Sequence record: NC_028899.1
Reading direction: 5' to 3' (one strand)
Length of the DNA: 64,000 nucleotides
Shown here: positions 3,876-40,952 of the stretch, piece by piece
How positions within the stretch are numbered: position 1 is the stretch's first letter
Layout: every line of letters begins with the position of its first letter
Program-made: the position numbers and the translations under genes
Notes under the pieces: model-generated
What the model was told of the DNA's origin: nothing
What the model saw: the letters and a program-made list of their open reading frames with translations, nothing else
Database searches by the model: none

Positions 3876-5221
3876 AACCTTCTCAAGTTGTACTTGATCA
3901 GCAACAGCAGCAACGGGAAGTAGTAGAACTTCTCCACATGTCCCCAGTTGTAGCTGTCGTCACACAGTTTCAGAATATCGCTGGCTGCGATAATTTTAAA
4001 GTCAATGTAGTCGAGCAGCAGGCTTTCGAGCAGCGACAGGTTCGTGTTGTCACGCGTATAGAACGCCTGAGAAAGCACGTAACCATCAAGCATGTTCACC
4101 GGCTTGATGTTCGGCATGACCCCTACGCTACCATCCGTCGGAGGCGGCACGGGCACATACGGCGGCATCGTGGACACGATGTTCACCGGCAGCACAGGTT
4201 TCTGGATTTCCTTGGACATCATGAAATCCACATTGGTTTTCGCATCAAGCGGATACACCACTTGAGCAATACCGTTGTAGCGCATGCTGGCAAGCAATGC
4301 CGAGCGATGGAAGTTCACACGAGACGTAACGCCCGTCTTCGTGTAAATCATTTTCATGAGCTTCGGATCACGATTGGACAACATCGTCCAGAGACTCAGC
4401 GAGCCGATTGCTCCATCGTCACCGATGTTCAGTTCACGGATCGACTGGATATGCACGTCGTCAAACGAGTCCATGATCGACTTGACGAAATCCACGAGAC
4501 CATGGTCATACGTCGGCACATCTTGCATGGGCACGACGAGCGTCATGTACTCACGGCTGAAATACTGGTTGAAGTACAACTGAATCATGTCGTACCAATA
4601 GGCCGCGAGCTTCTTGCCGTTCTCGTAGTCCTCTTCGACCAGCAACGGATTCTGCAAATTCAGCAGGAAATCCTTGACGAAGTAGTACGTGACCTGAGTC
4701 TTCTGTTCCAGATCGTTGATACGAACCCGATCGTTGATCGCGACCAGCTGGTATTCGATGGTGTGCGCATGATCGAGGAAGATCTGCATCGCCGTGACTT
4801 TCGTCACTTTGAAGATACCCTCGCGACCATCTGCTACACCGGCTCGGAACATGTCGCCTTCCTGAGGAACCAGGAACGGATACACGTTCGACATACCCTG
4901 CATCGTGATTTCGTTGGTAGCCGGATCCTGCGAGACTTGAGTCAAGTCCTGCGTGACCTTCAGTTCCATCGACCAGATGCGGCGATACTGTTGTTGAACT
5001 GCCGGCAAGGAAATATCCTGACCTTTCAGTTCGCTATTCTGATCGAGGATCTGTGAGTAGTAATCCACCACCCACGGCGAGCCTTCGATATACGCGATCA
5101 GATCGCTCTGAGGCGTATAAGTGGTATCGATGACAGCAGTCTTGACACCTGGCTTAAACGGACGAACGATGTCCGGTTTGGGCAGGTTAGGAGACTTGTC
5201 GGTATCTTCCCAAAGTGGCAT
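3872..5221 (-). CDS. Virion structural protein, phiKZ gp99-like
   Basis: 449 aa; synteny; LIAYIEGSPWVVDYYSQ and PQEGDMF segments resemble neck/head-completion proteins. Confidence 0.6.
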   Translation of the reverse strand: MPLWEDTDKSPNLPKPDIVRPFKPGVKTAVIDTTYTPQSDLIAYIEGSPWVVDYYSQILDQNSELKGQDISLPAVQQQYRRIWSMELKVTQDLTQVSQDPATNEITMQGMSNVYPFLVPQEGDMFRAGVADGREGIFKVTKVTAMQIFLDHAHTIEYQLVAINDRVRINDLEQKTQVTYYFVKDFLLNLQNPLLVEEDYENGKKLAAYWYDMIQLYFNQYFSREYMTLVVPMQDVPTYDHGLVDFVKSIMDSFDDVHIQSIRELNIGDDGAIGSLSLWTMLSNRDPKLMKMIYTKTGVTSRVNFHRSALLASMRYNGIAQVVYPLDAKTNVDFMMSKEIQKPVLPVNIVSTMPPYVPVPPPTDGSVGVMPNIKPVNMLDGYVLSQAFYTRDNTNLSLLESLLLDYIDFKIIAASDILKLCDDSYNWGHVEKFYYFPLLLLLIKYNLRRL

Positions 5222-5229
5222 TACGTCCT

Positions 5230-6780
5230 CTATTTCTTCGTGATTTCATAAACGCCATTGACTGTTGAGAACTGCACAGTCTTCATGGCACGATTGATGA
5301 CTCGACCACGCATGCATTCTGCAAACTGATCGAAAGTACGAGCGTTCAGGCCCTTGGCGATGTACTGACCGCAAGGACGATCGGAAGTCGTCGGTGCGAT
5401 GTAATCGACGATCTGATCGAACGCACAGCGTTGGGCTCTCAGACGCGCTTTAGCGTCTTCTGTGAGGTTTGTGAAGTCAGTTGACACCGACACACGGACG
5501 TGGTAGTACCGACGCTTATTGAGCGATCTGGTGCTCCACACGTTGAGGTTCTCGTCTACACGGATCCAAGACGGATCCATGAGGTTACGGCCCATGTACA
5601 AACTGACGTTTACAGCCGAATTGCGAGGCTGCGTTACGTACTGGGCTTCTGAGGCGATGAACTGCTTCATGCAGTCACTGAACTTGAATCCGTACGAATC
5701 TGCTTCGAGATCCGTCAGGTTCAGTAGCAAGTTAGGCTGACCATCTGGTTCGTCTCCCACGAGCACAAGAGTCGTTACCATGCGCATCGTCTTATCGACG
5801 ACATTGCGAGGCATGAACTCATCGAACGTCGGGAAATAACGACCCGGGAAATCGTTGTACGGAGCACCGACGTTTTGCATCGACTCGAAAGACTTCAGGT
5901 GAGCAAGCGACCACGACCGCGAGGTCTGGTGATCTTTCAGGCGTTGAAATCCTTCTTCATTCCGATACTTCTTGTCGAGGATCTGATTGTGAATCACAAT
6001 CGGATACATGAAGTGGACATCCTTCGGTTTCTCGTAACGCAAGACGTAAGGGATTTCGACTTCCCACACGTCCGTCTCATCCTTGCGTTGGCCGAAGTCC
6101 GGTTCAGCACCGATGTCGAAGAAACCGATACAACGACACTGCGTCTCTTTGAAGACGCCCAGCGTATTCTTGCCGGTCTGGTCGGTGAGCACACCCCAAC
6201 GCGGGTTCACCCATTTCTGGAAGAACTCATCGAATGTGTCGCCATAACCTGCCACGTTTTCCGTCATCTGCCAGATGGCTTTCAAGATAACCATGAAAGA
6301 TTCAGGCATCGAGAAAGAATACTGGAGTGTGTGGAGCCAAGTATCCTCGCGATTCGGGATCTTCATGATCATGTAATCGTACCAGCGACGGGCGTCCGTC
6401 TTGTTCTTGGCACGATAGTGAATCGTAAACTTCATTTCCACCGATGCATAGATCGGTCGCATTTCGACTTCGAGATCTCGATTGAGGAAAAGCGGAATCT
6501 GTTCGGCCTGTTTGGTCACCATCGCGGGCAACCAGTCTTGTACGTAGTTCTCCGTGATTTCCACGAAGATCTTGTCGGTGGAAGGAAAGCGCACGCTTTC
6601 GTTTTTCTTCGAGATGTAGCCGTGAGGCTGAGCCACCGTATCCGTATAGCCCGGATAATTGATGGTCATATCGGCAGGCAATCCCATCCGGTCGATCAGA
6701 ATTTCCTGAACCGTTGCAACAGCAATCGCACGGCTTACCGACTGATCGGATTCCAGGATAGGTCGTTGTACTTTGGGCAT
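5230..6780 (-). CDS. Virion structural protein, phiKZ gp98-like
   Basis: 516 aa; synteny. Confidence 0.6.
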   Translation of the reverse strand: MPKVQRPILESDQSVSRAIAVATVQEILIDRMGLPADMTINYPGYTDTVAQPHGYISKKNESVRFPSTDKIFVEITENYVQDWLPAMVTKQAEQIPLFLNRDLEVEMRPIYASVEMKFTIHYRAKNKTDARRWYDYMIMKIPNREDTWLHTLQYSFSMPESFMVILKAIWQMTENVAGYGDTFDEFFQKWVNPRWGVLTDQTGKNTLGVFKETQCRCIGFFDIGAEPDFGQRKDETDVWEVEIPYVLRYEKPKDVHFMYPIVIHNQILDKKYRNEEGFQRLKDHQTSRSWSLAHLKSFESMQNVGAPYNDFPGRYFPTFDEFMPRNVVDKTMRMVTTLVLVGDEPDGQPNLLLNLTDLEADSYGFKFSDCMKQFIASEAQYVTQPRNSAVNVSLYMGRNLMDPSWIRVDENLNVWSTRSLNKRRYYHVRVSVSTDFTNLTEDAKARLRAQRCAFDQIVDYIAPTTSDRPCGQYIAKGLNARTFDQFAECMRGRVINRAMKTVQFSTVNGVYEITKK

Positions 6781-6822
6781 AAGTGAGTCCCGTATTGGTT
6801 CTATGTCAAAAGATCAAACGAT

Positions 6823-6854
6823 ATACTACTCCTGGCACCGGCCAGGAGTAGTAT
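6823..6854 (-). terminator. Hairpin terminator
   Basis: ATACTACTCCTGGC-ACCG-GCCAGGAGTAGTAT, 14-bp stem. Confidence 0.75.
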
Positions 6855-6857
6855 CGA

Positions 6858-7271
6858 TCAATCACGCTGCATGTAATCGGGTAAATCAGGAAATGGCTGG
6901 ATCGTTCCTTTCAATCCATGGGAACAGTCCGAAAGGAAGAATACTTCACCAGGTTTAGCGCCGTTGCACCCTACCCAGGTATGACAGCGCTGACACTCGA
7001 AATCGTGTTCGTCTTCCGGATGCTTTTCATTGAACGTACACCAGCAATCATCGCCAGCTTTATGCGAAGAACAGTAGTGGCCTGTTGTCACCAGTACACT
7101 CGGACCAAATACGGGGTTGTTCACATCGCCATTCCACGTCCAGTTTTGTCCTGGGCGACCACCTGCCGTTGTGATCTGGTGTGAGGTTTTGCATCCCTGA
7201 CACCAATACGTCAAACCACTACGTCCCTGGCTGTCTGCCCAGCTACGTAGTTTCTTTGAGAGCAGTCCCAT
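6858..7271 (-). CDS. DUF6527-like Cys/His protein
   Basis: WCQGC..H, WTWNGD...P.FGPSVLV, CH and SDCSH motifs typical of DUF6527. The ATG at 7271 is preferred over the upstream TTG. Confidence 0.65.
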   Translation of the reverse strand: MGLLSKKLRSWADSQGRSGLTYWCQGCKTSHQITTAGGRPGQNWTWNGDVNNPVFGPSVLVTTGHYCSSHKAGDDCWCTFNEKHPEDEHDFECQRCHTWVGCNGAKPGEVFFLSDCSHGLKGTIQPFPDLPDYMQRD

Positions 7272-7307
7272 AATCTTCTCAACGAGTATTGTCCAAAAGA
7301 TCAACGC

Positions 7308-7335
7308 CTACCAGTAGCCTTTCGGCTACTGGTAG
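7308..7335 (-). terminator. Hairpin terminator
   Basis: CTACCAGTAGCC-TTTC-GGCTACTGGTAG (GAAA loop on minus). Confidence 0.75.
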
Positions 7336-7345
7336 ATGTCAATGC

Positions 7346-13037: not shown

Positions 13038-13070
13038 GATTTCATTCCTCGGGATAACAGGACTTTTAAA

Positions 13071-14381
13071 GTGGATAACAGATTAGATCTAACGATTGAC
13101 CAGATCTATCAACTCGGCAAAAATGGTTCTGAGGACCTTGCAGCCGGGCTGGAGCGCATTTACAACGCGACTCCGCTCGGACCGCTGCCGAGTAACATGG
13201 TCAACACGATTTACGGTATCAACCACCGACAGACTCAGCTGGCTTTGCCTTTCAACCGCGACAATTATGGTTTGACATTTTTTACGCGGCCAAGGATGAA
13301 CCTGACCACTAACAACATGCGTTTTGTTAGGCAAATGTATCCGTTGTTGAACACGGAGCCAAGGTCTATTCAGCGGATTATTCGCTGCTTGCTGGATCCC
13401 TCACTGGCATATCCAGACACGCAGTATACCAACATCCAACCTGTCAAGTCGCCCTACGTGGACGACCTGAATATGTTTATTCCTCTGCTGTCAAATCTTT
13501 GCCTGACAGTTTCCGGCTGGCCTGATTTCGTCGTCGATACTCATACGACGCCCGAGGGTCATTACCGGGAATCGCACAGCATGATCGACAGCAGTGTTGA
13601 AGTGAAAAACACATACGAATTGTCGGTGTCCTTTCGGAACATACCGAATAATCCGGTCACATTATTGTTTTATTTCTGGATCTTCTACGCATCGAAGGTC
13701 TTCGAAGGTGAAATGATTCCGTATGGCTCCTCGCTGTACGAAAATGAGATCGATTACAACACCCGGATCTACCGACTGGTACTTGATCCGACCAAACGAT
13801 ACGTGCAACATATCCTGTCGACGGGTGCTTCGTTCCCGCTGAACGCTCCTGTTGGTGCGCTTGGCAACTTCGATCACGAGCAGCCCTTCAATGAATCAGG
13901 GGATAACGTCAACATCCGTTTCCAATGTATCGGGATGGATTACAACGATCCGATTCAGATCCAGGAATTTAACACTGCCGTCTCGATCATGAATCCTGGC
14001 ATGGATGACGCATTCCGTGACCAGTATTACATCAAGATTCCTTACCAGATCCTTTCGTTCTTCAACATGCGTGGTTATCCGCGCATCGAGAAGAGCACGA
14101 TGGAACTGGAATGGTACGTGTCCTATGCGATGTTCCAGTCGTATGCCAGCCAGCTGGCTGACTTTGCGAATATCCAGGGTATGCGCAACCAGACGTTCTT
14201 GCAATATATTTCCGCCTCTAGTGTCAATGATTATAAGAAAGCGTTGAGTGACATGGATAGCTCCGTGCCTAACGCTACCTATAACGGCGGGCTGGTCAAA
14301 CGAGCCGTCAATGGCGAATTTAGCCAGGATGAACTCGACCAGATTTCTCAAGCATACTTCGCTTCCAATGGAGCCAATTAA
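13071..14381 (+). CDS. Virion structural protein, phiKZ gp88-like (tail/baseplate candidate)
   Basis: 436 aa, GTG start; synteny; GLTFFTRPRMNL segment. Confidence 0.65.
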   Translation: MDNRLDLTIDQIYQLGKNGSEDLAAGLERIYNATPLGPLPSNMVNTIYGINHRQTQLALPFNRDNYGLTFFTRPRMNLTTNNMRFVRQMYPLLNTEPRSIQRIIRCLLDPSLAYPDTQYTNIQPVKSPYVDDLNMFIPLLSNLCLTVSGWPDFVVDTHTTPEGHYRESHSMIDSSVEVKNTYELSVSFRNIPNNPVTLLFYFWIFYASKVFEGEMIPYGSSLYENEIDYNTRIYRLVLDPTKRYVQHILSTGASFPLNAPVGALGNFDHEQPFNESGDNVNIRFQCIGMDYNDPIQIQEFNTAVSIMNPGMDDAFRDQYYIKIPYQILSFFNMRGYPRIEKSTMELEWYVSYAMFQSYASQLADFANIQGMRNQTFLQYISASSVNDYKKALSDMDSSVPNATYNGGLVKRAVNGEFSQDELDQISQAYFASNGAN

Positions 14382-33848: not shown

Positions 33849-34253
33849 TCATTCCGGAACATAAGAAAGTACAACGTAAGCGATACCAGGTTCGAGTCCG
33901 ATCTTGTCGCCAAGAATCGGAATCAAGCTGATACCGTCCAATGACGACATATAAAGCGCCGTCAGCCCAGCTTTGTCGTTTTCGAATTCACATTCACACG
34001 TGAATGCGCCATCGTCTTCGACAATTTTGCCAGCCTTAATGCACTGGCTAAAATCGGTTTTGGAGGGATTCTTCCCCTGGATGTACTGCTGGAGTGCGTA
34101 GGCCAAACGAGCCGGTCTAGCGCCCTCGTTGAAGGCCGCAAAGTGCTTTCTCCACTCATCCAGATCAGTCTCGTACTCAGGCGGTAAGAAAATGTCCACA
34201 ACCTGATTGGTACGAGACCGGATAGTCTTTTGAACTAACCGGTCCAGGCTCAT
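33849..34253 (-). CDS. Hypothetical protein (134 aa)
   Basis: ORF coupled to the upstream gene (GGAG RBS in its last codons). Confidence 0.65.
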   Translation of the reverse strand: MSLDRLVQKTIRSRTNQVVDIFLPPEYETDLDEWRKHFAAFNEGARPARLAYALQQYIQGKNPSKTDFSQCIKAGKIVEDDGAFTCECEFENDKAGLTALYMSSLDGISLIPILGDKIGLEPGIAYVVLSYVPE

Positions 34254-34254
34254 A

Positions 34255-34530
34255 TTACTCCTCGTTCAAAAGTAAAAGTACTTTGTTGAAAACATCTTGC
34301 CAGGTATCGAACGGGCCTTCAATGAGATTGAGTTCCAGTTCGGTTTCCAGTTCAGACAGAATGTCCATGTGATCCAGCGCATCCAGATCCCCGCTCTGGA
34401 AAGACAACGCCAGGAATTCACGGAACTCCGCACTGTTCTCGACCGCAGACTTGCGAACCGTTTTCGAATCGTACGACGCTACAACATTGACAAGCACTCG
34501 TCGTGCTTTTTGTGCTTTGGCCTCAGCCAT
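34255..34530 (-). CDS. Acyl-carrier-protein-like protein lacking the phosphopantetheine serine (DAL instead of DSL)
   Basis: SFQSGDLDALDHMDILSELETELELNL..FDTWQDV aligns by eye to ACP [35 protein letters not shown]; 91 aa, acidic C-terminal half. Confidence 0.65.
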   Translation of the reverse strand: MAEAKAQKARRVLVNVVASYDSKTVRKSAVENSAEFREFLALSFQSGDLDALDHMDILSELETELELNLIEGPFDTWQDVFNKVLLLLNEE

Positions 34531-34584: not shown

Positions 34585-34779
34585 TCAGTCGCGCTTTATG
34601 TTGTATAAATCTTTCAATTCAGGATGGCTGACGCGAAGTTGAATCATCCAGGAACTCGGCACGTCATTGAATTCGAAAAACATCTGAAAAGCCTGCCCTT
34701 TCTCGTCCACAACCTGACAGAGAATGTGTTTGTCCTGAGGCAGTTTCTTCATTTGTTCGATAATGTCTGCGGGAGTCAT
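34585..34779 (-). CDS. Small hypothetical protein (64 aa)
   Basis: ORF with GAGG RBS. Confidence 0.6.
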   Translation of the reverse strand: MTPADIIEQMKKLPQDKHILCQVVDEKGQAFQMFFEFNDVPSSWMIQLRVSHPELKDLYNIKRD

Positions 34780-34804
34780 AAGACCTCAAAAAAAATAAGT
34801 AGAC

Positions 34805-35295
34805 AGCAAAAAGGGCGGTACAGAGTGGCCGAAGCCACCCCATACCGTGCCTAAGATGAAACAGAACGTGCATCCCAAGGTCGTCGAACCTACCGTCCAG
34901 GAATTACAGACGACGACTATGGGCTGCAAGCTACTCAGCGAGTGTCTCCCGACATATCGCATAACTTACAACTGGTCCCGAAAAGACCCCTTACAATCGA
35001 TGCGGGCGTAACACACACGAAGGCCCAAGATACGCTCCGGCGCCGCGAACGCGCGCGGCGCCGATAAGCTGCCAGGCATCACCAAGCTCTTAAAGGAGAT
35101 CTCATATCGGCGGCACTAAAAGGCGGCCATGAGATGTGATTGCGATGCGGGATGGAAACCGATTTCGAGACCGATTCCTATCGCGCGTACGACATGTGTG
35201 TTTCGCAGGCTTTTCACCTGAGTGAGGGGCTAAGTGGCAACCAAGCGGCCAATCCCAACACATCTGACTTGCACAGATCTTCAGACGCCATCTTG
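34805..35295 (-). ncRNA. Candidate large structured ncRNA (~490 nt) ending in a UUCG terminator hairpin
   Basis: No credible ORF. Many stems (11-bp 35037-35064; ATCTCAT/ATGAGAT; CGCAT/ATGCG; GTCGTCG/CGACGAC), long-range pairs, a 9-bp pseudoknot candidate, and GU wobbles favouring minus. Confidence 0.6.
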
Positions 35296-35307
35296 TTAAA
35301 GAACGAA

Positions 35308-35344
35308 TCGGCTGAACGATCCCTCACGAGATTGGTCCAGCCGA
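35308..35344 (-). terminator. Hairpin after the Ala-rich gene (terminator or first domain of the ncRNA)
   Basis: TCGGCTGGAC...ATCTC-GTGA-GGGAT...GTTCAGCCGA followed by TTCGTTCTTT. Confidence 0.6.
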
Positions 35345-35354
35345 CAGATCACGC

Positions 35355-36383
35355 TTACGGTTGCAGCGCGTCGGTTTGGTCCGCTGCGGCGGCGTCGACT
35401 GCGGGCGCGGCAGCTTGTTCAGCCGTTGCGTCCGCTGCCGGTGCCTGTGCTTGAGCGGCATCGGCTTCCACCGGTGCTGCCGTTTGCGCCGCATCCGCAG
35501 CTTGCTCCGCCGGAGCGCCAGCGAGTGCCGCAGCCGTTGCCGGGTCTGCGTTCACTTCCGGCGTTTGCGCCAGAGCTTCCGGCGAGTGGTCGACTTCTTG
35601 CGAAGCGTCACCAGCCGGTGCAGCTGCTTGATCCGCAGCGGGGGCTTCAGCTTGAGCAGCGTCCGCTGCCGGGGCTTCTGCCTGTGCTGCTTGCTCACCG
35701 ACGGCGGGGTCGACTTGCGGGGCAGCTTCTTGAGCCACGCCTGCATCAGCCGCGCCGGCCGGTTGAGCTTGTGCAGCAGCGTCGTTCGTCACGTCAGCAG
35801 CTTGGGCCGGTGCTGCGGCTTGTGCATCTGCTGCGGGAGCGTCGACTTGTGCAGCATCTGCGGCCGGAGCCGTTTCTGCTGCTGCATCGCCTGCGACTTG
35901 CTCGGGTGCCTGTTCAGCTTGCGCTGCACCTGCGTCCACGCCAGCCGCGGGATCTTGTTGGGCGTCCGCTGCCGGAGCAGCTTGTTCCGCCGTACCGGCA
36001 TCCGCCGGTTGTTCTGCTTGAGCGGCGTCGGCTGCGGGAGCCGCGTCCGTTGCGCCAGCTTCTTGCGCCGGGGCGTCGCCCGCCGGTTGTGCTGCTGCGC
36101 CTGCGTCTTGTGCCTGACCTGCTGCGACCTGGCTGTCCAGTGCAGCTGCTGCTGCGCCGGCTGCTGCCGCTGCGGCCACGCCGTTGTCGCCGAGGCCGAG
36201 TGCTTCGTTCGTCTTGTCGCCGAGACCTTCGACGTTGTCCGTCACCACGACCGGATGCTCTTCCTTCTTCTTGTGGAAGAGGTTGACGATGCGGTCGACC
36301 ACGTGTTCGGGCAGTGCAGCGAGGGCTTCGACGGCCAGCAGTTCGGCTTTCAGTTCGTCGATGACTTTGTGGATGATACTCAC
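35355..36383 (-). CDS. Acidic Ala/Gln/Pro/Asp-rich intrinsically disordered protein with an N-terminal helix
   Basis: APAADAAQAE-type repeats; AAGGAAAG RBS; highly biased codons. Confidence 0.75.
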   Translation of the reverse strand: MSIIHKVIDELKAELLAVEALAALPEHVVDRIVNLFHKKKEEHPVVVTDNVEGLGDKTNEALGLGDNGVAAAAAAGAAAAALDSQVAAGQAQDAGAAAQPAGDAPAQEAGATDAAPAADAAQAEQPADAGTAEQAAPAADAQQDPAAGVDAGAAQAEQAPEQVAGDAAAETAPAADAAQVDAPAADAQAAAPAQAADVTNDAAAQAQPAGAADAGVAQEAAPQVDPAVGEQAAQAEAPAADAAQAEAPAADQAAAPAGDASQEVDHSPEALAQTPEVNADPATAAALAGAPAEQAADAAQTAAPVEADAAQAQAPAADATAEQAAAPAVDAAAADQTDALQP

Positions 36384-36434
36384 GATCTTTCCTTTATGGA
36401 AGGTTAAGTTGTACAGCGTTTTACCAGCAAAACG

Positions 36435-36629
36435 TTACTGGCTCATAGCATCTTGAGTCAGATGCAGAACCCCTGGCGGAGGCGAGTGCAAACGCGATCC
36501 GTCGTTCTCCTGAGTCGTCTCGCAGTACTGCGGAAACACCAGGCTGGAATCGTGCCAGAGGCGCCCACTAAAGTGGACGATGTCCTTTCTGCAATGAATG
36601 CAGATTGATTTTGTTTTGTTCTTTGCCAT
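36435..36629 (-). CDS. Small hypothetical Cys/His protein
   Basis: CIHC, H and C residues; ORF follows the upstream gene closely. Confidence 0.5.
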   Translation of the reverse strand: MAKNKTKSICIHCRKDIVHFSGRLWHDSSLVFPQYCETTQENDGSRLHSPPPGVLHLTQDAMSQ

Positions 36630-36637
36630 GGAGCTTT

Positions 36638-37021
36638 TTAAAGGCCGATGGGCTGGAACCAGATCACTCCGAGTACGGGGACCGACGCAATCACGAACGC
36701 GTAAGCAAGCTTACAGAACGTGTGTAGGAGTTGATCTCCCATTGCGCTAATGCGCTTTTGGACTCGAAGACAATCGATGGTCCAGTGAAGGATGAATTCA
36801 GCGAGCGCAAGTCGAAGCGCAAGTCCGGGATAAAACAACCAGACGACTCCGAACGTTCCGGCTGCCTGTATCAGACAGTGGGCACTCAAGCCGAACCACC
36901 ACGGGAAGACTTCCACCTGCTTGTTCTTGATGTCGGACAGGAATTGCCCTTGACCAGGAAAGTCGAAGTACAGGTGAACAGCCAGCAGTGCAACCACTGC
37001 CAAGATAAACGTCTCGAACAT
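36638..37021 (-). CDS. DUF3307-family membrane protein
   Basis: HLYFDFPGQ, HCLIQ, EFILHWTID and DQLLH motifs with TM helices; CAGGAG RBS. Confidence 0.75.
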   Translation of the reverse strand: MFETFILAVVALLAVHLYFDFPGQGQFLSDIKNKQVEVFPWWFGLSAHCLIQAAGTFGVVWLFYPGLALRLALAEFILHWTIDCLRVQKRISAMGDQLLHTFCKLAYAFVIASVPVLGVIWFQPIGL

Positions 37022-37039
37022 GGTCGCTCCTGAATGAAA

Positions 37040-37492
37040 GAAGGCGCAGCCTAAGCTTAGTCTACAAGGCCGTAAAGGATCTTACGTGCATATCCAGGAC
37101 GCCAATCATCTCGTCCATAAATTTGCATCAGTTCCTCAAACGACTCGTAGTACTCCGGATCCCATTGATCTTCAAGGCCGTAGCACGAGCAGTGAGACGC
37201 GTACACTTCGAAGAATTGCTTCTTCTCGTGATCGTATCCAAACACCACCGAAGATCCTTCATAATCCTGGCACTCATACCCTGCGTACAGGATCTGGTAC
37301 TTCGGATCATCTACGATTCGAAATTGCTCGAAAACATCTTCGCGCGATTTAAATTCGTCATGGAAAACGGGTTCTTTCGACAACAGCGTAGCTTCGTTCA
37401 TGATAATTCCAGTATTGAGTTAAGGAAAGCATTTCCTATACGCACTCTTTACTGAACTTCTCACTACCTAACCACGCCTAAGCTGCGCCTTC
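37040..37492 (-). repeat. 16-bp imperfect inverted repeat (37040-37055 / 37477-37492) bracketing ORF 37057..37401
   Basis: Minus RNA GAAGGCGCAGCUUAGG pairs fully with CUUAGGCUGCGCCUUC (14 Watson-Crick + 2 GU). Confidence 0.8.
37057..37401 (-). CDS. Hypothetical phage protein (114 aa)
   Basis: YAGYECQDYEGS...FEVYASHCSCYGLEDQW motif, recalled as seen in diverse phages. Confidence 0.7.
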   Translation of the reverse strand: MNEATLLSKEPVFHDEFKSREDVFEQFRIVDDPKYQILYAGYECQDYEGSSVVFGYDHEKKQFFEVYASHCSCYGLEDQWDPEYYESFEELMQIYGRDDWRPGYARKILYGLVD

Positions 37493-37500
37493 GAAGAAAA

Positions 37501-37590
37501 AGCCTGAGATCTATATCGCCGGGGGAGACGCTTTGTTAGAGCCGCATACCGTAGGAGGTTGGAGCATGCGCTCGAACTCGATCTCAGACC
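37501..37590 (-). ncRNA. Candidate 90-nt sRNA with anti-Shine-Dalgarno and C-rich loops
   Basis: 11-bp closing stem; long hairpin with loop UCCAACCUCCUACG; second hairpin with loop UCCCCC; U-run after. GU pairs work only on minus. Confidence 0.6.
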
Positions 37591-37630
37591 AAAAAAAATA
37601 GAAGGTGAACTGTGAAAGCTTCACCCCCTT
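37591..37630 (-). terminator. Intrinsic terminator between the two small RNA elements
   Basis: GGTGAAGCT-TTCAC-AGTTCACC followed by TTCTATTTTTTTT. Confidence 0.7.
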
Positions 37631-37640
37631 ATTAAAGAGG

Positions 37641-37750
37641 TGCCCAGAACGCATACCCGTCGCCGCGGGCGCATCCTGATTGGGTCTGTGTCATCGCCTG
37701 CGTGCGTTCTCGCCGCGTGGCTATGAAATCAAGACGATCGTTCTGGGCAA
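37641..37750 (-). ncRNA. Candidate 110-nt structured RNA
   Basis: Perfect 11-bp closing stem TGCCCAGAACG/CGTTCTGGGCA; inner GTCTTGATT/AATCAGGAT, TCAT/ATGA, GCG-AGAA-CGC and GCCCG/CGGGT stems. Confidence 0.55.
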
Positions 37751-37775: not shown

Positions 37776-38552
37776 TTATTTCCTTTTCAACTCATTCTGC
37801 CATTGCCAACGGCGGCAACGATAGAAGTATCGAATCATCATCTCCTGAGGACCGGAGTCATCATTCGATGATGGTGCTCGGTTGGCGATCTGCTTCAATG
37901 TTTCCGTGCGACGCTTCACGTAATGTTCCGTGATCGATAACGTCATTAACGGATTGACGATTTTCTTACCGCCATCGTCTCCATCATAAACCACGAATTC
38001 ATCTTTGCCGTCTTCGCCGAGATTCCACCGACAGATCACGACACCTTCTTTCTCGTAATAGGTCCGTATTTGAGTATAGCAATACGGACCCGACTTGTAT
38101 TCGTTATCGTGGATTACGAGATCGTCGTGTTTGGTCACGAGCTGGAAATGGTTCCGACGCAGTTCAGTGTACGCACTGCGACCGGAGATCCGCTGATACG
38201 CCAGTTCTGCCGCCATGATCCGTTCTTCCTTTCTGGCTTCTTGCCAAGGAATGAATTCTTTCGAATTCATTTCATAGAAGACCGTGAGGATGAATTTCAA
38301 CAACCGGTTCTGACGATGTCCTTGCGGATGGGCTGTCTCAGGAAGAGAGAACAGTCGAAGCAGCCGCTCGTCTACCTTGAACTTGTCTTTATTCGCGATT
38401 TCGTGTTCATCATTCTCGCGAATGAAAGCAGCAGGCGCCAGGTACATCTTTCCGGCCAAGTTCCTGTCTGTCGGCTTATCCGAAAGAATCTCGGACAGCA
38501 TGAAGTAAGGCCCAGCCAGCGTATTGAATTCTTGAATGACTTGCAGTAACAT
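37776..38552 (-). CDS. Hypothetical protein (258 aa)
   Basis: ORF with AGGAGAGG RBS. Confidence 0.7.
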   Translation of the reverse strand: MLLQVIQEFNTLAGPYFMLSEILSDKPTDRNLAGKMYLAPAAFIRENDEHEIANKDKFKVDERLLRLFSLPETAHPQGHRQNRLLKFILTVFYEMNSKEFIPWQEARKEERIMAAELAYQRISGRSAYTELRRNHFQLVTKHDDLVIHDNEYKSGPYCYTQIRTYYEKEGVVICRWNLGEDGKDEFVVYDGDDGGKKIVNPLMTLSITEHYVKRRTETLKQIANRAPSSNDDSGPQEMMIRYFYRCRRWQWQNELKRK

Positions 38553-38597
38553 CTTTGCCTCTCCTTTTAGGTAAGTAGGCCAAACTACGTTTTGAAA

Positions 38598-40931: not shown

Positions 40932-40952
40932 GTTATATATAGTTGAAAATCT
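40932..40952 (-). promoter_or_regulatory. Putative early promoter
   Basis: Minus strand AGATTTTCAACTATATATAAC. Confidence 0.65.

Follow-up and report, generated by a model that had tools for sequence, protein, structure and literature searches.

Conserved, strand-specific RNA structures in a gene-flux region of the nucleus-forming Ralstonia phage RSF1

Introduction

Do the stretches between the genes of a nucleus-forming jumbo phage hold structured RNAs of their own, or only the strong hairpins of its terminators? The question is raised by a 3-kb locus of Ralstonia phage RSF1 (positions 34805-37750 of the window, by which we mean the last 64 kb of the genome, 64,000 nucleotides (nt) in all; a window position equals the record position minus 158,888). 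Here a first-pass annotation, made from the letters alone, had placed four closed-stem RNA elements on the minus strand, which we refer to as A (a large multi-domain element), B (a long-range helix that encloses the open reading frame (ORF) ORF206), C and D (two small closed-stem RNAs), and had suggested that they form an undescribed RNA-based module. Chimalliviruses part transcription, which proceeds inside a protein shell, from translation, and the few short candidates for RNAs derived from untranslated regions (UTRs) that have been reported are all from phiKZ, namely 3'UTR_PHIKZ298 (∼110 nt) and 5'UTR_gp40 (∼196 nt) (PMC10914365); reviews go no further than noting the expression of some non-coding RNAs by phiKZ (PMC13282480). 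The accessible text of the isolation and genome papers on RSL2, RSF1 and Chiangmaivirus does not mention promoters, terminators or non-coding elements.

Results

The 4-kb region that holds the elements is 100% identical to RSF1 (NC_028899.1, 222,888 base pairs (bp), genus Chiangmaivirus). The first-pass annotation was right to assume a chimallivirus, since the window codes for chimallin, the nuclear shell protein, and for several split beta subunits of RNA polymerase. Every gene from ORF211 down to ORF201 is carried by the minus strand. We found the locus in eight more members of the genus at 70-80% DNA identity (FLC4-4C, FLC4-5C, FLC4-11C, FLC6, FLC8, RsoM3USA, RSL2 and SURPRISE13), which gave nine genomes for comparison, and we added four contigs (the metagenome contig L079, L088 and, from Logan, L089 and L092). 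When the flanking proteins ORF208 and ORF202 were used as tblastn queries against 50,697 phage records, matches were returned from the same genus only.

All four structures exist at the places where they had been described; they are strand-specific, carry compensatory substitutions and are conserved while the flanking genes change. Their sizes needed small corrections: the helix of B is real with arms of 17 rather than 16 nt, the conserved core of A measures ∼510 nt, D measures 109 nt and C 84-89 nt. Structure-preserving substitutions in the relatives, for which the annotation had called, were seen above controls and on one strand in A, B and C.

Element A lies in an ORF-free gap of 575 nt (35354-34780), and its multi-domain conserved core occupies 35297-34788 on the minus strand. 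As folded from the alignment, the non-coding body (34854-35297) consists of a hairpin, H1 (35288-35260), with AGAUCU in its loop, a small hairpin (35220-35206) followed by a CGAAA linker, a long-range helix (35202-35189 with 35024-35010) enclosing three branches, hairpin d (35006-34977) and a long 3' hairpin (34939-34861). The core ends in an intrinsic terminator (34788-34853) made of a 14-bp stem capped by a UUCG loop and followed by CCCUUUUUGCUG and CUUAUUUUUUUU; it is 99% paired, with 4 compensatory pairs, and the ribosome-binding site and ATG of ORF204 come at most 10 nt after it. A further minus-strand hairpin directly 3' of the ORF204.1 stop codon (35307-35345; 11 pairs, 5 of them with compensatory change) was flagged as terminator-like and is possibly a weak terminator; in contig L079 an ORF replaces its equivalent.

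The fold of A is well supported by the relatives. RNAalifold predicted 164 pairs from the nine genomes, 23 of which show compensatory change. Standard pairs filled 96.1% of the pair cells, compared with 38-44% in controls in which the partners had been slid by 1-3 columns, and double-change pairs numbered 23 compared with 0-7 in these controls; none of 500 column shuffles reached the observed covariation. The claim that the GU wobbles are valid on the minus strand only was upheld by the alignment of A, where 216 G-U cells stand against 10 A-C cells, and the consensus folding energy was -165.9 kcal/mol in the sense and -120.7 kcal/mol in the antisense direction. Single-sequence folding of A gave a z-score of about -3.4, the same on both strands.

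We found A in all nine genomes and in the metagenome contig L079, with 75-80% identity between RSF1 and the relatives, which is no higher than that of the adjoining coding DNA. A protein-coding region or a pseudogene was considered and rejected, since no ORF is common to the relatives, the alignment indels (1, 2, 5, 16 and 17 nt) are not multiples of three and the substitutions have no 3-base periodicity (variable sites by phase, 85/88/75). Nor does A have large non-coding counterparts elsewhere in the window: the two remaining annotation gaps of ∼600 nt hold ORFs (a 148-amino-acid (aa) ORF and the mis-started ORF184, respectively) and have no sequence similarity to A, which is thus the sole long truly non-coding stretch in the 64 kb.

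Two features of the A sequence deserve mention in their own right. The palindrome AGAUCU in the H1 loop is invariant and could allow loop-loop self-pairing; the same hexamer is part of the closing stem of C (37504-37587). The A sequences are also mosaic, in that RSL2 resembles RSF1 in a variable hairpin (35229-35259) and the FLC group in the remainder, while RsoM3USA and SURPRISE13 have other segments in common, a pattern that indicates recombination inside the RNA gene.

More divergent lineages were reached through neighbouring proteins and metagenome contigs. Contig L079, found via the ORF202 protein, has an extra ORF where the first hairpin would be, stopping 10 nt short of the A core, as well as a ∼50-nt insertion and compensatory changes in the terminator stem; with this sequence added to the alignment, 96.4% of the cells were paired and there were 23 compensatory pairs compared with 1-6 in slid controls. 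Contig L089 codes for proteins 23-65% identical to ORF209, ORF208, ORF205, ORF206, ORF203, ORF202 and ORF201, and directly upstream of its ORF203-like gene, at the syntenic place, there is an ORF-free gap of 421 nt. This gap contains CAGGUGAGAGCCCUG-CGAAA and then, in register, ACGCCCGUA ... UACGGGCGU, where RSF1 has CAGGUGAAAAGCCUG-CGAAA and then ACACACAUG ... CGUGUGUGU, so that the small hairpin, the linker and a long-range helix of 9 bp are kept with four double substitutions; it ends in a terminator and UUAUUUUUUU, followed by ∼100 nt of AT-rich spacer before the next gene. The profile match to this gap being weak (see below), its homology to A rests on synteny, an 18/21 motif match and the in-register helices, and we regard it as probable, not proven.

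In the still different contig L088, a distant relative of RSF1, we noted two ORF-poor and highly structured stretches, 4274-4829 (556 nt) and 5340-5686 (347 nt), which flank a transfer RNA gene (tRNA-Ser) and an ORF206-like gene. The second stretch ends in a terminator and has GCGGGUACUGU and UAGACGAAU in common with the A-like element of L089. Rfam searches of L088 and L089 returned tRNA only.

Element B is a long-range helix formed by a 5' arm, GAAGGCGCAGCUUAGGC (37476-37492, minus strand), and a 3' arm, GCUUAGGCUGCGCCUUC (37040-37056, minus strand), which were identified by motif and duplex folding and between which lies ORF206 (37057-37401, minus strand; 114 aa, phrog_8792). The 3' arm comes directly after the ORF206 stop codon and 19 nt before the ribosome-binding site of ORF205. 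Each arm has 17 nt, giving 15 Watson-Crick and 2 G-U pairs, and the duplex can be extended to ∼26 interrupted pairs (∼ -42 kcal/mol); across five phages its energy ranged from -36 to -42.5 kcal/mol. Between RSF1 and the FLC/RsoM3USA type there are two compensatory pairs (A-U to G-C and C-G to U-A), and both G-U pairs, which would be C.A mismatches on the other strand, are kept in 5/5 cassettes. B offers about two turns of sense-strand double-stranded RNA from the flanks of the unit that it encloses, as expected of an RNase III stem.

The boundaries of the ORF206 indel coincide with the arms of B. The cassette is present with both arms in five of the nine genomes (RSF1, FLC4-4C, FLC4-5C, FLC6 and RsoM3USA) and in contig L092, and absent from FLC8, FLC4-11C, RSL2 and SURPRISE13; comparison of filled and empty sites revealed no consistent target-site duplication at the junctions, and in the window the arm occurs only at its two inverted sites. 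Homologues of ORF206, with the invariant motif SHCSCYGLEDQW, were found in 127 phage records. In Pectobacterium phage CBB, E. coli phage phi92 and the Proteus phages Pm5461 (T4-like) and M4H10_20 (T5-like), which span four unrelated phage families, the homologue lies between tRNA genes, and in L088 it lies 80 nt after tRNA-Ser; in four other phages the homologues do not adjoin tRNAs. ORF206 matched no Pfam or NCBIfam family, a sequence search of the PDB gave a best E of 0.43, and its confident AlphaFold model (predicted local distance difference test score, pLDDT, 89.3) matched no fold significantly (best E = 0.2). A weak second PHROG match carries a doubtful 'integrase' label, and among the ten ORFs from ORF201 to ORF208 no recombinase, transposase or integrase family had credible support. 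We therefore rejected B as the terminal inverted repeats of a transposon or miniature inverted-repeat transposable element, given the lack of a consistent target duplication, the single copy and the absence of a transposase signature in ORF206.

Element C (37502-37590, minus strand; z = -3.1) is a closed-stem RNA with two inner hairpins. Its alignment over the nine genomes has a mean column identity of 87%, and RNAalifold predicted three helices with 29 pairs in all, of which 4 show compensatory change, a moderate degree of covariation; 94.6% of the cells were paired compared with 23-39% in slid controls, and double-change pairs numbered 4 compared with 0-1. The apical loop, CCAACCUCCUAC (12 nt, 37551-37562), is invariant save for one C/U change and includes ACCUCCU, which is also found at the 3' end of 16S ribosomal RNA (rRNA), making the loop anti-Shine-Dalgarno-like. 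Within the window it is best complemented, at 11/12, by the ribosome-binding site of ORF227, an RNA polymerase subunit gene; we treat this match as a lead only, because any strong Shine-Dalgarno site would score alike.

Element D (37641-37749, minus strand) begins 27 nt after the ORF207 stop codon and is a closed three-helix RNA whose 11-bp closing stem, TGCCCAGAACG/CGTTCTGGGCA (37749-37641), is followed inward by a long second helix with an apical GC-rich hairpin and by a short third hairpin. Its minimum free energy of -51.1 kcal/mol (z = -4.8) was equalled by none of 200 shuffles. Hardly any variation is seen in the 25 nt at the 5' end or in the 3' strand of the closing stem, and the interior occurs in four or five lineage-specific versions, all of which fold to one closed shape (z from -3.1 to -5.1). 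The shape is therefore kept across the genus, but the closing stem lacks compensatory change. An intrinsic terminator, placed by folding and alignment, comes next (37591-37628, minus strand; hairpin GGGGGUGAAGC...GUUCACCUUC, then UAUUUUUUUU). Its position is kept in 9/9 genomes with two unrelated hairpin sequences in use, which argues that termination at this spot is selected. In 8/9 genomes TATG stands 4 nt before the D stem, RSF1 itself having TATC; in phiKZ the consensus of late promoters is TATG, overlapping +1 (PMC7618050), but with four bases as evidence a promoter before D is weakly indicated at best.

Could C or D be tRNA-like, or D an integron site? ARAGORN detected no tRNA or transfer-messenger RNA (tmRNA) in the window and the Rfam tRNA model (RF00005) was likewise without match, so the tRNA-like reading was discarded. 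The D stem, CCAGAAC ... GTTCTGG, fits neither RYYYAAC nor GTTRRRY and there is no credible integrase, so it was not accepted as an attC site. A mobile cassette of the PeSL type was rejected as well, since the B arms are inverted rather than direct and A, B, C and D are single-copy.

How far do these elements rise above the background of the genome? Most intergenic gaps of the window fold with z-scores of -3 to -7, because they hold strong terminator hairpins. The comparison with shuffled sequences thus gave a divided answer: D beats all 200 shuffles, but the z-scores of the other intergenic gaps are alike. For the same reason the description of the locus as an "island" was overstated; the conserved elements are there, but strong intergenic hairpins followed by TTAT or T-runs are the norm genome-wide, as they are in phiKZ (PMC10914365). 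As stability of a single sequence is generic here, it is conservation and covariation that lift the elements above background, and what is expected generically of a conserved structured RNA was found for A, C and B and in part for D. In addition, both D and A lie between a stop codon and an intrinsic terminator, as do 3'-UTR-derived non-coding RNAs of the phiKZ type.

Searches for known families and for further copies were consistently negative. The covariance models of Rfam 15, which cover riboswitches, leaders, small RNAs, ribozymes, tmRNA, RNase P, 6S, group I and II introns, GOLLD, ROOL and YrlA, gave no matches in the whole window at the gathering score, and at E ≤ 10 only four chance-level matches between 34500 and 38000 (11-21 bits, compared with gathering scores of 58-100); this fits the description of the elements as undescribed. 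In the window the profiles of A, C and D match only themselves, and the genome of each relative holds a single place that matches the region. When the conserved blocks of A, C and D were used as exact patterns to scan IMG/VR and GTDB, the latter at one genome per species, RSF1, RSL2 and chance 15-18-mers were all that came back.

The surroundings of the elements are a gene-flux zone in which ORF207, ORF206, ORF204 and a 64-aa ORF come and go while the RNA elements persist. BLAST comparison with the relatives and direct reading showed a hyperplastic region throughout which A, C and D stay. ORF207 (258 aa, 37776-38597) occurs in RSF1 only, and RSL2 carries ORF200 (100 aa; 5580-5905 of our sequence L008) at exactly the same site. 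ORF204 has been removed by in-frame deletion in FLC6, FLC8 and FLC4-11C (L005, L006 and L007; window 34585-34779). A Cys/His-rich ORF of 64 aa (MAKNKTKSICIHC...; 36435-36629, minus strand), which is conserved, also present in L079 and not in the RefSeq annotation, has been lost in FLC8 and FLC4-11C.

As to the transcription of the locus, two intergenic motifs recur in the window. The first is a strong hairpin followed at once by TATGTC (six cases: 322, 1753, 24399, 26946 and 32931 on the sense strand and 23140 on the plus strand), which resembles the hairpin-TTAT terminators (PMC10914365) and the TATG late promoter (PMC7618050) of phiKZ; hairpin plus TTAT is the experimentally mapped terminator type of that phage (PMC10914365). 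The second, CAAC-N-ATATAT-M-A-Y, stands 35-70 nt before start codons (seven cases, on the sense strand at 1727, 26894, 40941, 47997, 53153, 60187 and 62724). We consider the first probably a composite terminator/late promoter and the second probably an early or middle promoter of the genus. Neither occurs between 34500 and 38000, the nearest copy on the sense strand being that of the second motif at 40941, which suggests, without proving it, that ORF211 to ORF201 make up a single long unit whose internal terminators follow ORF210, D and A. In L079 there is no space for a separate promoter, since the ORF in front of the A core stops only 10 nt away from it.

Discussion

What might these RNA structures do? 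We favour, tentatively and with a rough probability of 0.4, the reading that they are RNA-level punctuation and terminator-capped 3' modules of a long accessory operon of a nucleus-forming jumbo phage. The operon would be read from the promoter-like motif ∼3 kb upstream into long transcripts across internal, partly leaky intrinsic terminators, and D and A, each with its terminator, would be the structured 3' ends of nested transcripts. Such ends may shield the transcripts against 3' exonucleases and could be set free as 3'-UTR-derived RNAs. Among the elements, A is the strongest candidate for a stable non-coding RNA that has its own function. B would be a long-range double-stranded stem built from the flanks of the exchangeable ORF206 cassette, and may act as a processing or insulation site of the RNase III type that uncouples the ORF206 message from its neighbours or excises it, much as, in the tRNA arrays of other phages, the homologous ORF would be freed by the tRNAs on either side of it. 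C would give the read-through RNA a structured beginning, and its anti-Shine-Dalgarno-like loop could pair with ribosome-binding sites. That the four elements form one coherent module, and that they are linked to RNA export from the phage nucleus, is speculation.

Several points weigh against this reading. The comparison covers ∼6 independent lineages only, the five FLC genomes being near-identical, and the consensus structure of A was scored on the same alignment that yielded it. The L089 element is not a significant match by sequence alone (nhmmer profile of A, E = 1.4 in 0.68 Mb). The closing stem of D is 97% paired across the genomes but varies by G-C/G-U exchange with no double change, so covariation supports D weakly. 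The upstream promoter is assigned by motif recurrence alone, and we found no transcript data for any Chiangmaivirus in the literature. The 17 contiguous bp of B are at the low end for RNase III, an enzyme of the host that may be kept out of the phage nucleus. Finally, A at ∼500 nt is far more elaborate than the protection of a 3' end needs, which favours a role in trans.

Precisely because A is large, elaborate and covarying, we take as a serious, though doubtful, rival the idea that A, and perhaps C and D as well, are non-coding RNA genes whose products act in trans, A being a new large structured RNA that serves as a scaffold, a sponge or the partner of a phage or host protein and C a small RNA that pairs with ribosome-binding sites. 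The size of A, its multi-domain build and its many covarying helices exceed what a terminator or a 3' cap requires, it is kept when either neighbour is lost or replaced, and the distant relative L089 keeps its core; the near-invariant C loop has ACCUCCU as in the 16S anti-Shine-Dalgarno and an 11/12 complement at ORF227, and the TATG before D in 8/9 genomes could make D and its terminator a transcription unit of ∼150 nt. These arguments are offset by the absence of both recurrent promoter motif classes in front of A and C, by the TATC that RSF1 has in place of TATG, itself just 4 nt long, and by the fact that a Shine-Dalgarno-like match is expected for any strong ribosome-binding site. We would give somewhat less credence to the bolder proposal that A founds a new class of large (∼330-560 nt) structured, trans-acting non-coding RNAs of nucleus-forming jumbo phages and, together with C and D, makes up an "RNA gene cluster" where others carry tRNA arrays, a link suggested by the association of the ORF206 family with such arrays. 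Members of this class would work as scaffolds, as decoys or by self-association through the invariant AGAUCU loop. It is unlikely that D and A are instead cis-regulatory leaders, attenuators or riboswitch-like elements that gate read-through into ORF206/ORF205 and into ORF204-ORF201, respectively. In both, a structured domain does lead directly into an intrinsic terminator, behind which comes the ribosome-binding site of the next gene, and the ORF203-ORF201 block downstream of A is constant in all relatives including L088 and L089 while the upstream neighbour varies. However, riboswitch and leader families of Rfam had no match even at E ≤ 10, inspection of the alignment and folds by eye found no conserved antiterminator in which D pairs with its terminator, lineages have swapped the sequence of this terminator wholesale with the D stem unchanged, and the AT-rich spacer of L089 separates terminator and next gene.

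Action at the level of DNA, with folded single-stranded DNA or inverted repeats serving as recombination sites (PeSL, attC), transposon ends or a replication origin, would sit well with a hot spot of gene gain and loss, with indel boundaries of ORF206 that coincide with an inverted repeat and with the insertion of ORF207 (RSF1) and ORF200 (RSL2) at one site, and G-T wobbles are tolerated in single-stranded DNA hairpins too. We nonetheless judge it very improbable: the arms of B and the other elements are single-copy in the window with one matching place per relative, the cassette junctions lack a consistent target-site duplication, the ten ORFs from ORF201 to ORF208 have no credible recombinase or transposase match, the arms are inverted where PeSLs are direct, the D stem has no attC cores, the structures are on the transcribed strand and end in terminators, and the cumulative GC skew has no inflection near 35 kb. 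Hardly credible at all is the view that the elements have no function and are neutral remnants, either genes in decay or chance hairpins, whose apparent conservation reflects close kinship. Their restriction to one genus and a few metagenome contigs, the 75-80% identity of RSF1 across A (no more than in neighbouring coding DNA) and the generically high folding z-scores of this genome speak for such a view, but it must then account for compensatory changes far above slid and shuffled controls, a G-U to A-C asymmetry of 216:10, the retention of the elements while adjoining ORFs are deleted, and a core helix kept with four double changes in L089, where the proteins are 23-65% identical.

Returning to the favoured reading of punctuation and capped 3' modules, its nearest known parallel is phiKZ, also a nucleus-forming jumbo phage with its own RNA polymerases and with structured UTR RNAs by hairpin-TTAT or T-run terminators. 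A is 3-5 times longer than the phiKZ RNAs and multi-domain, and the latter have been seen by Northern blot and Grad-seq, whereas the RSF1 elements are known from sequence alone; no phiKZ record was matched in a DNA search with the RSF1 region. GOLLD (RF01998) and ROOL (RF03087) resemble A in being phage-encoded, multi-domain and several hundred nt long. GOLLD and ROOL examples are often found near tRNA genes, which has a parallel in the ORF206 family, typical of tRNA arrays elsewhere and represented beside tRNA-Ser in L088. Their covariance models, however, did not match A even at E ≤ 10, and A is narrowly distributed (one genus and a few contigs) and terminator-ended inside an operon. We regard A as an undescribed RNA family of a known general kind.

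B can be likened to RNase III stems, such as the intergenic R sites of T7 and the stems around 16S and 23S rRNA, in that it is a long-range sense duplex made from the flanks of an enclosed unit, with ∼26 interrupted pairs and conserved G-U pairs. It differs from them in having 17 contiguous pairs only and in enclosing a single mobile accessory ORF rather than rRNA; cleavage is putative, and the access of host RNase III to the RNA of a nucleus-forming phage is uncertain. The PeSL cassettes of T4-type phages, where conserved non-coding stem-loops flank exchangeable ORFs in a hyperplastic region (PMC2839356, PMC4122927), are another likeness, as are the composite hairpin and TATGTC motifs elsewhere in the RSF1 genome. 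PeSLs, however, are many similar direct-repeat copies that serve as recombination substrates, whereas B is a unique inverted pair and A, C and D are single-copy. The tRNA cluster of T4 holds stable RNAs (species 1 and 2, rnaC/rnaD) that are small, structured and beside small ORFs, and phage tRNA arrays employ tRNA punctuation. The occurrence of ORF206 homologues between tRNA genes in four unrelated phage families recalls this arrangement, but the RSF1 window is without tRNA and neither ARAGORN nor Rfam finds C or D tRNA-like.

Few large structured RNAs combine a well-supported fold with no known function, and each of those added so far has repaid study. What the present analysis yields is a precise secondary-structure model, backed by covariation, for a ∼500-nt RNA, together with two smaller elements and a long-range stem around a mobile gene. 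It illustrates that in a region of gene flux a scaffold of non-coding RNA can outlast the genes between which it lies, and it makes A a concrete, testable candidate for non-coding RNA biology in nucleus-forming phages. As these phages can be grown on laboratory strains of Ralstonia and Burkholderia, function is directly open to transcript mapping and compensatory mutagenesis.

Additional observations

The insertion site used by ORF207 and ORF200 follows the ORF208 stop codon and TTTCAAAAC, and the two ORFs have a C-terminal tail (...FYR.CRR...K) and the 3' flank AAATAAAAAAATAA in common. The deletion of ORF204 has left a four-codon mini-ORF (ATG AAG CGA GAC TGA) behind the same ribosome-binding site, A upstream being untouched. 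ORF204.1 (35355-36416, minus strand) has a short structured N-terminus and is otherwise of low complexity, rich in Ala, Gln, Asp and Pro; its length ranges from 756 to 1353 nt among the relatives and it is unannotated in the RefSeq record of RSL2. Contig L092, of 1.2 kb, starts exactly at the first base of C (∼37590), after the T-run of the D terminator, which could be an assembly break at the homopolymer or, if the run is of RNA, the end of a transcript.

We also noted several problems in the annotation of NC_028899. An unannotated ORF of 148 aa occupies 6858-7304 (minus strand) within the gap 6757-7345, and ORF184 is mis-started, with a possible start at 13071 within the gap 13038-13664. ORF202 and ORF203 are annotated at 258 and 243 nt, whereas the relatives share ORFs of 405 and 276 nt (33849-34253 and 34255-34530).

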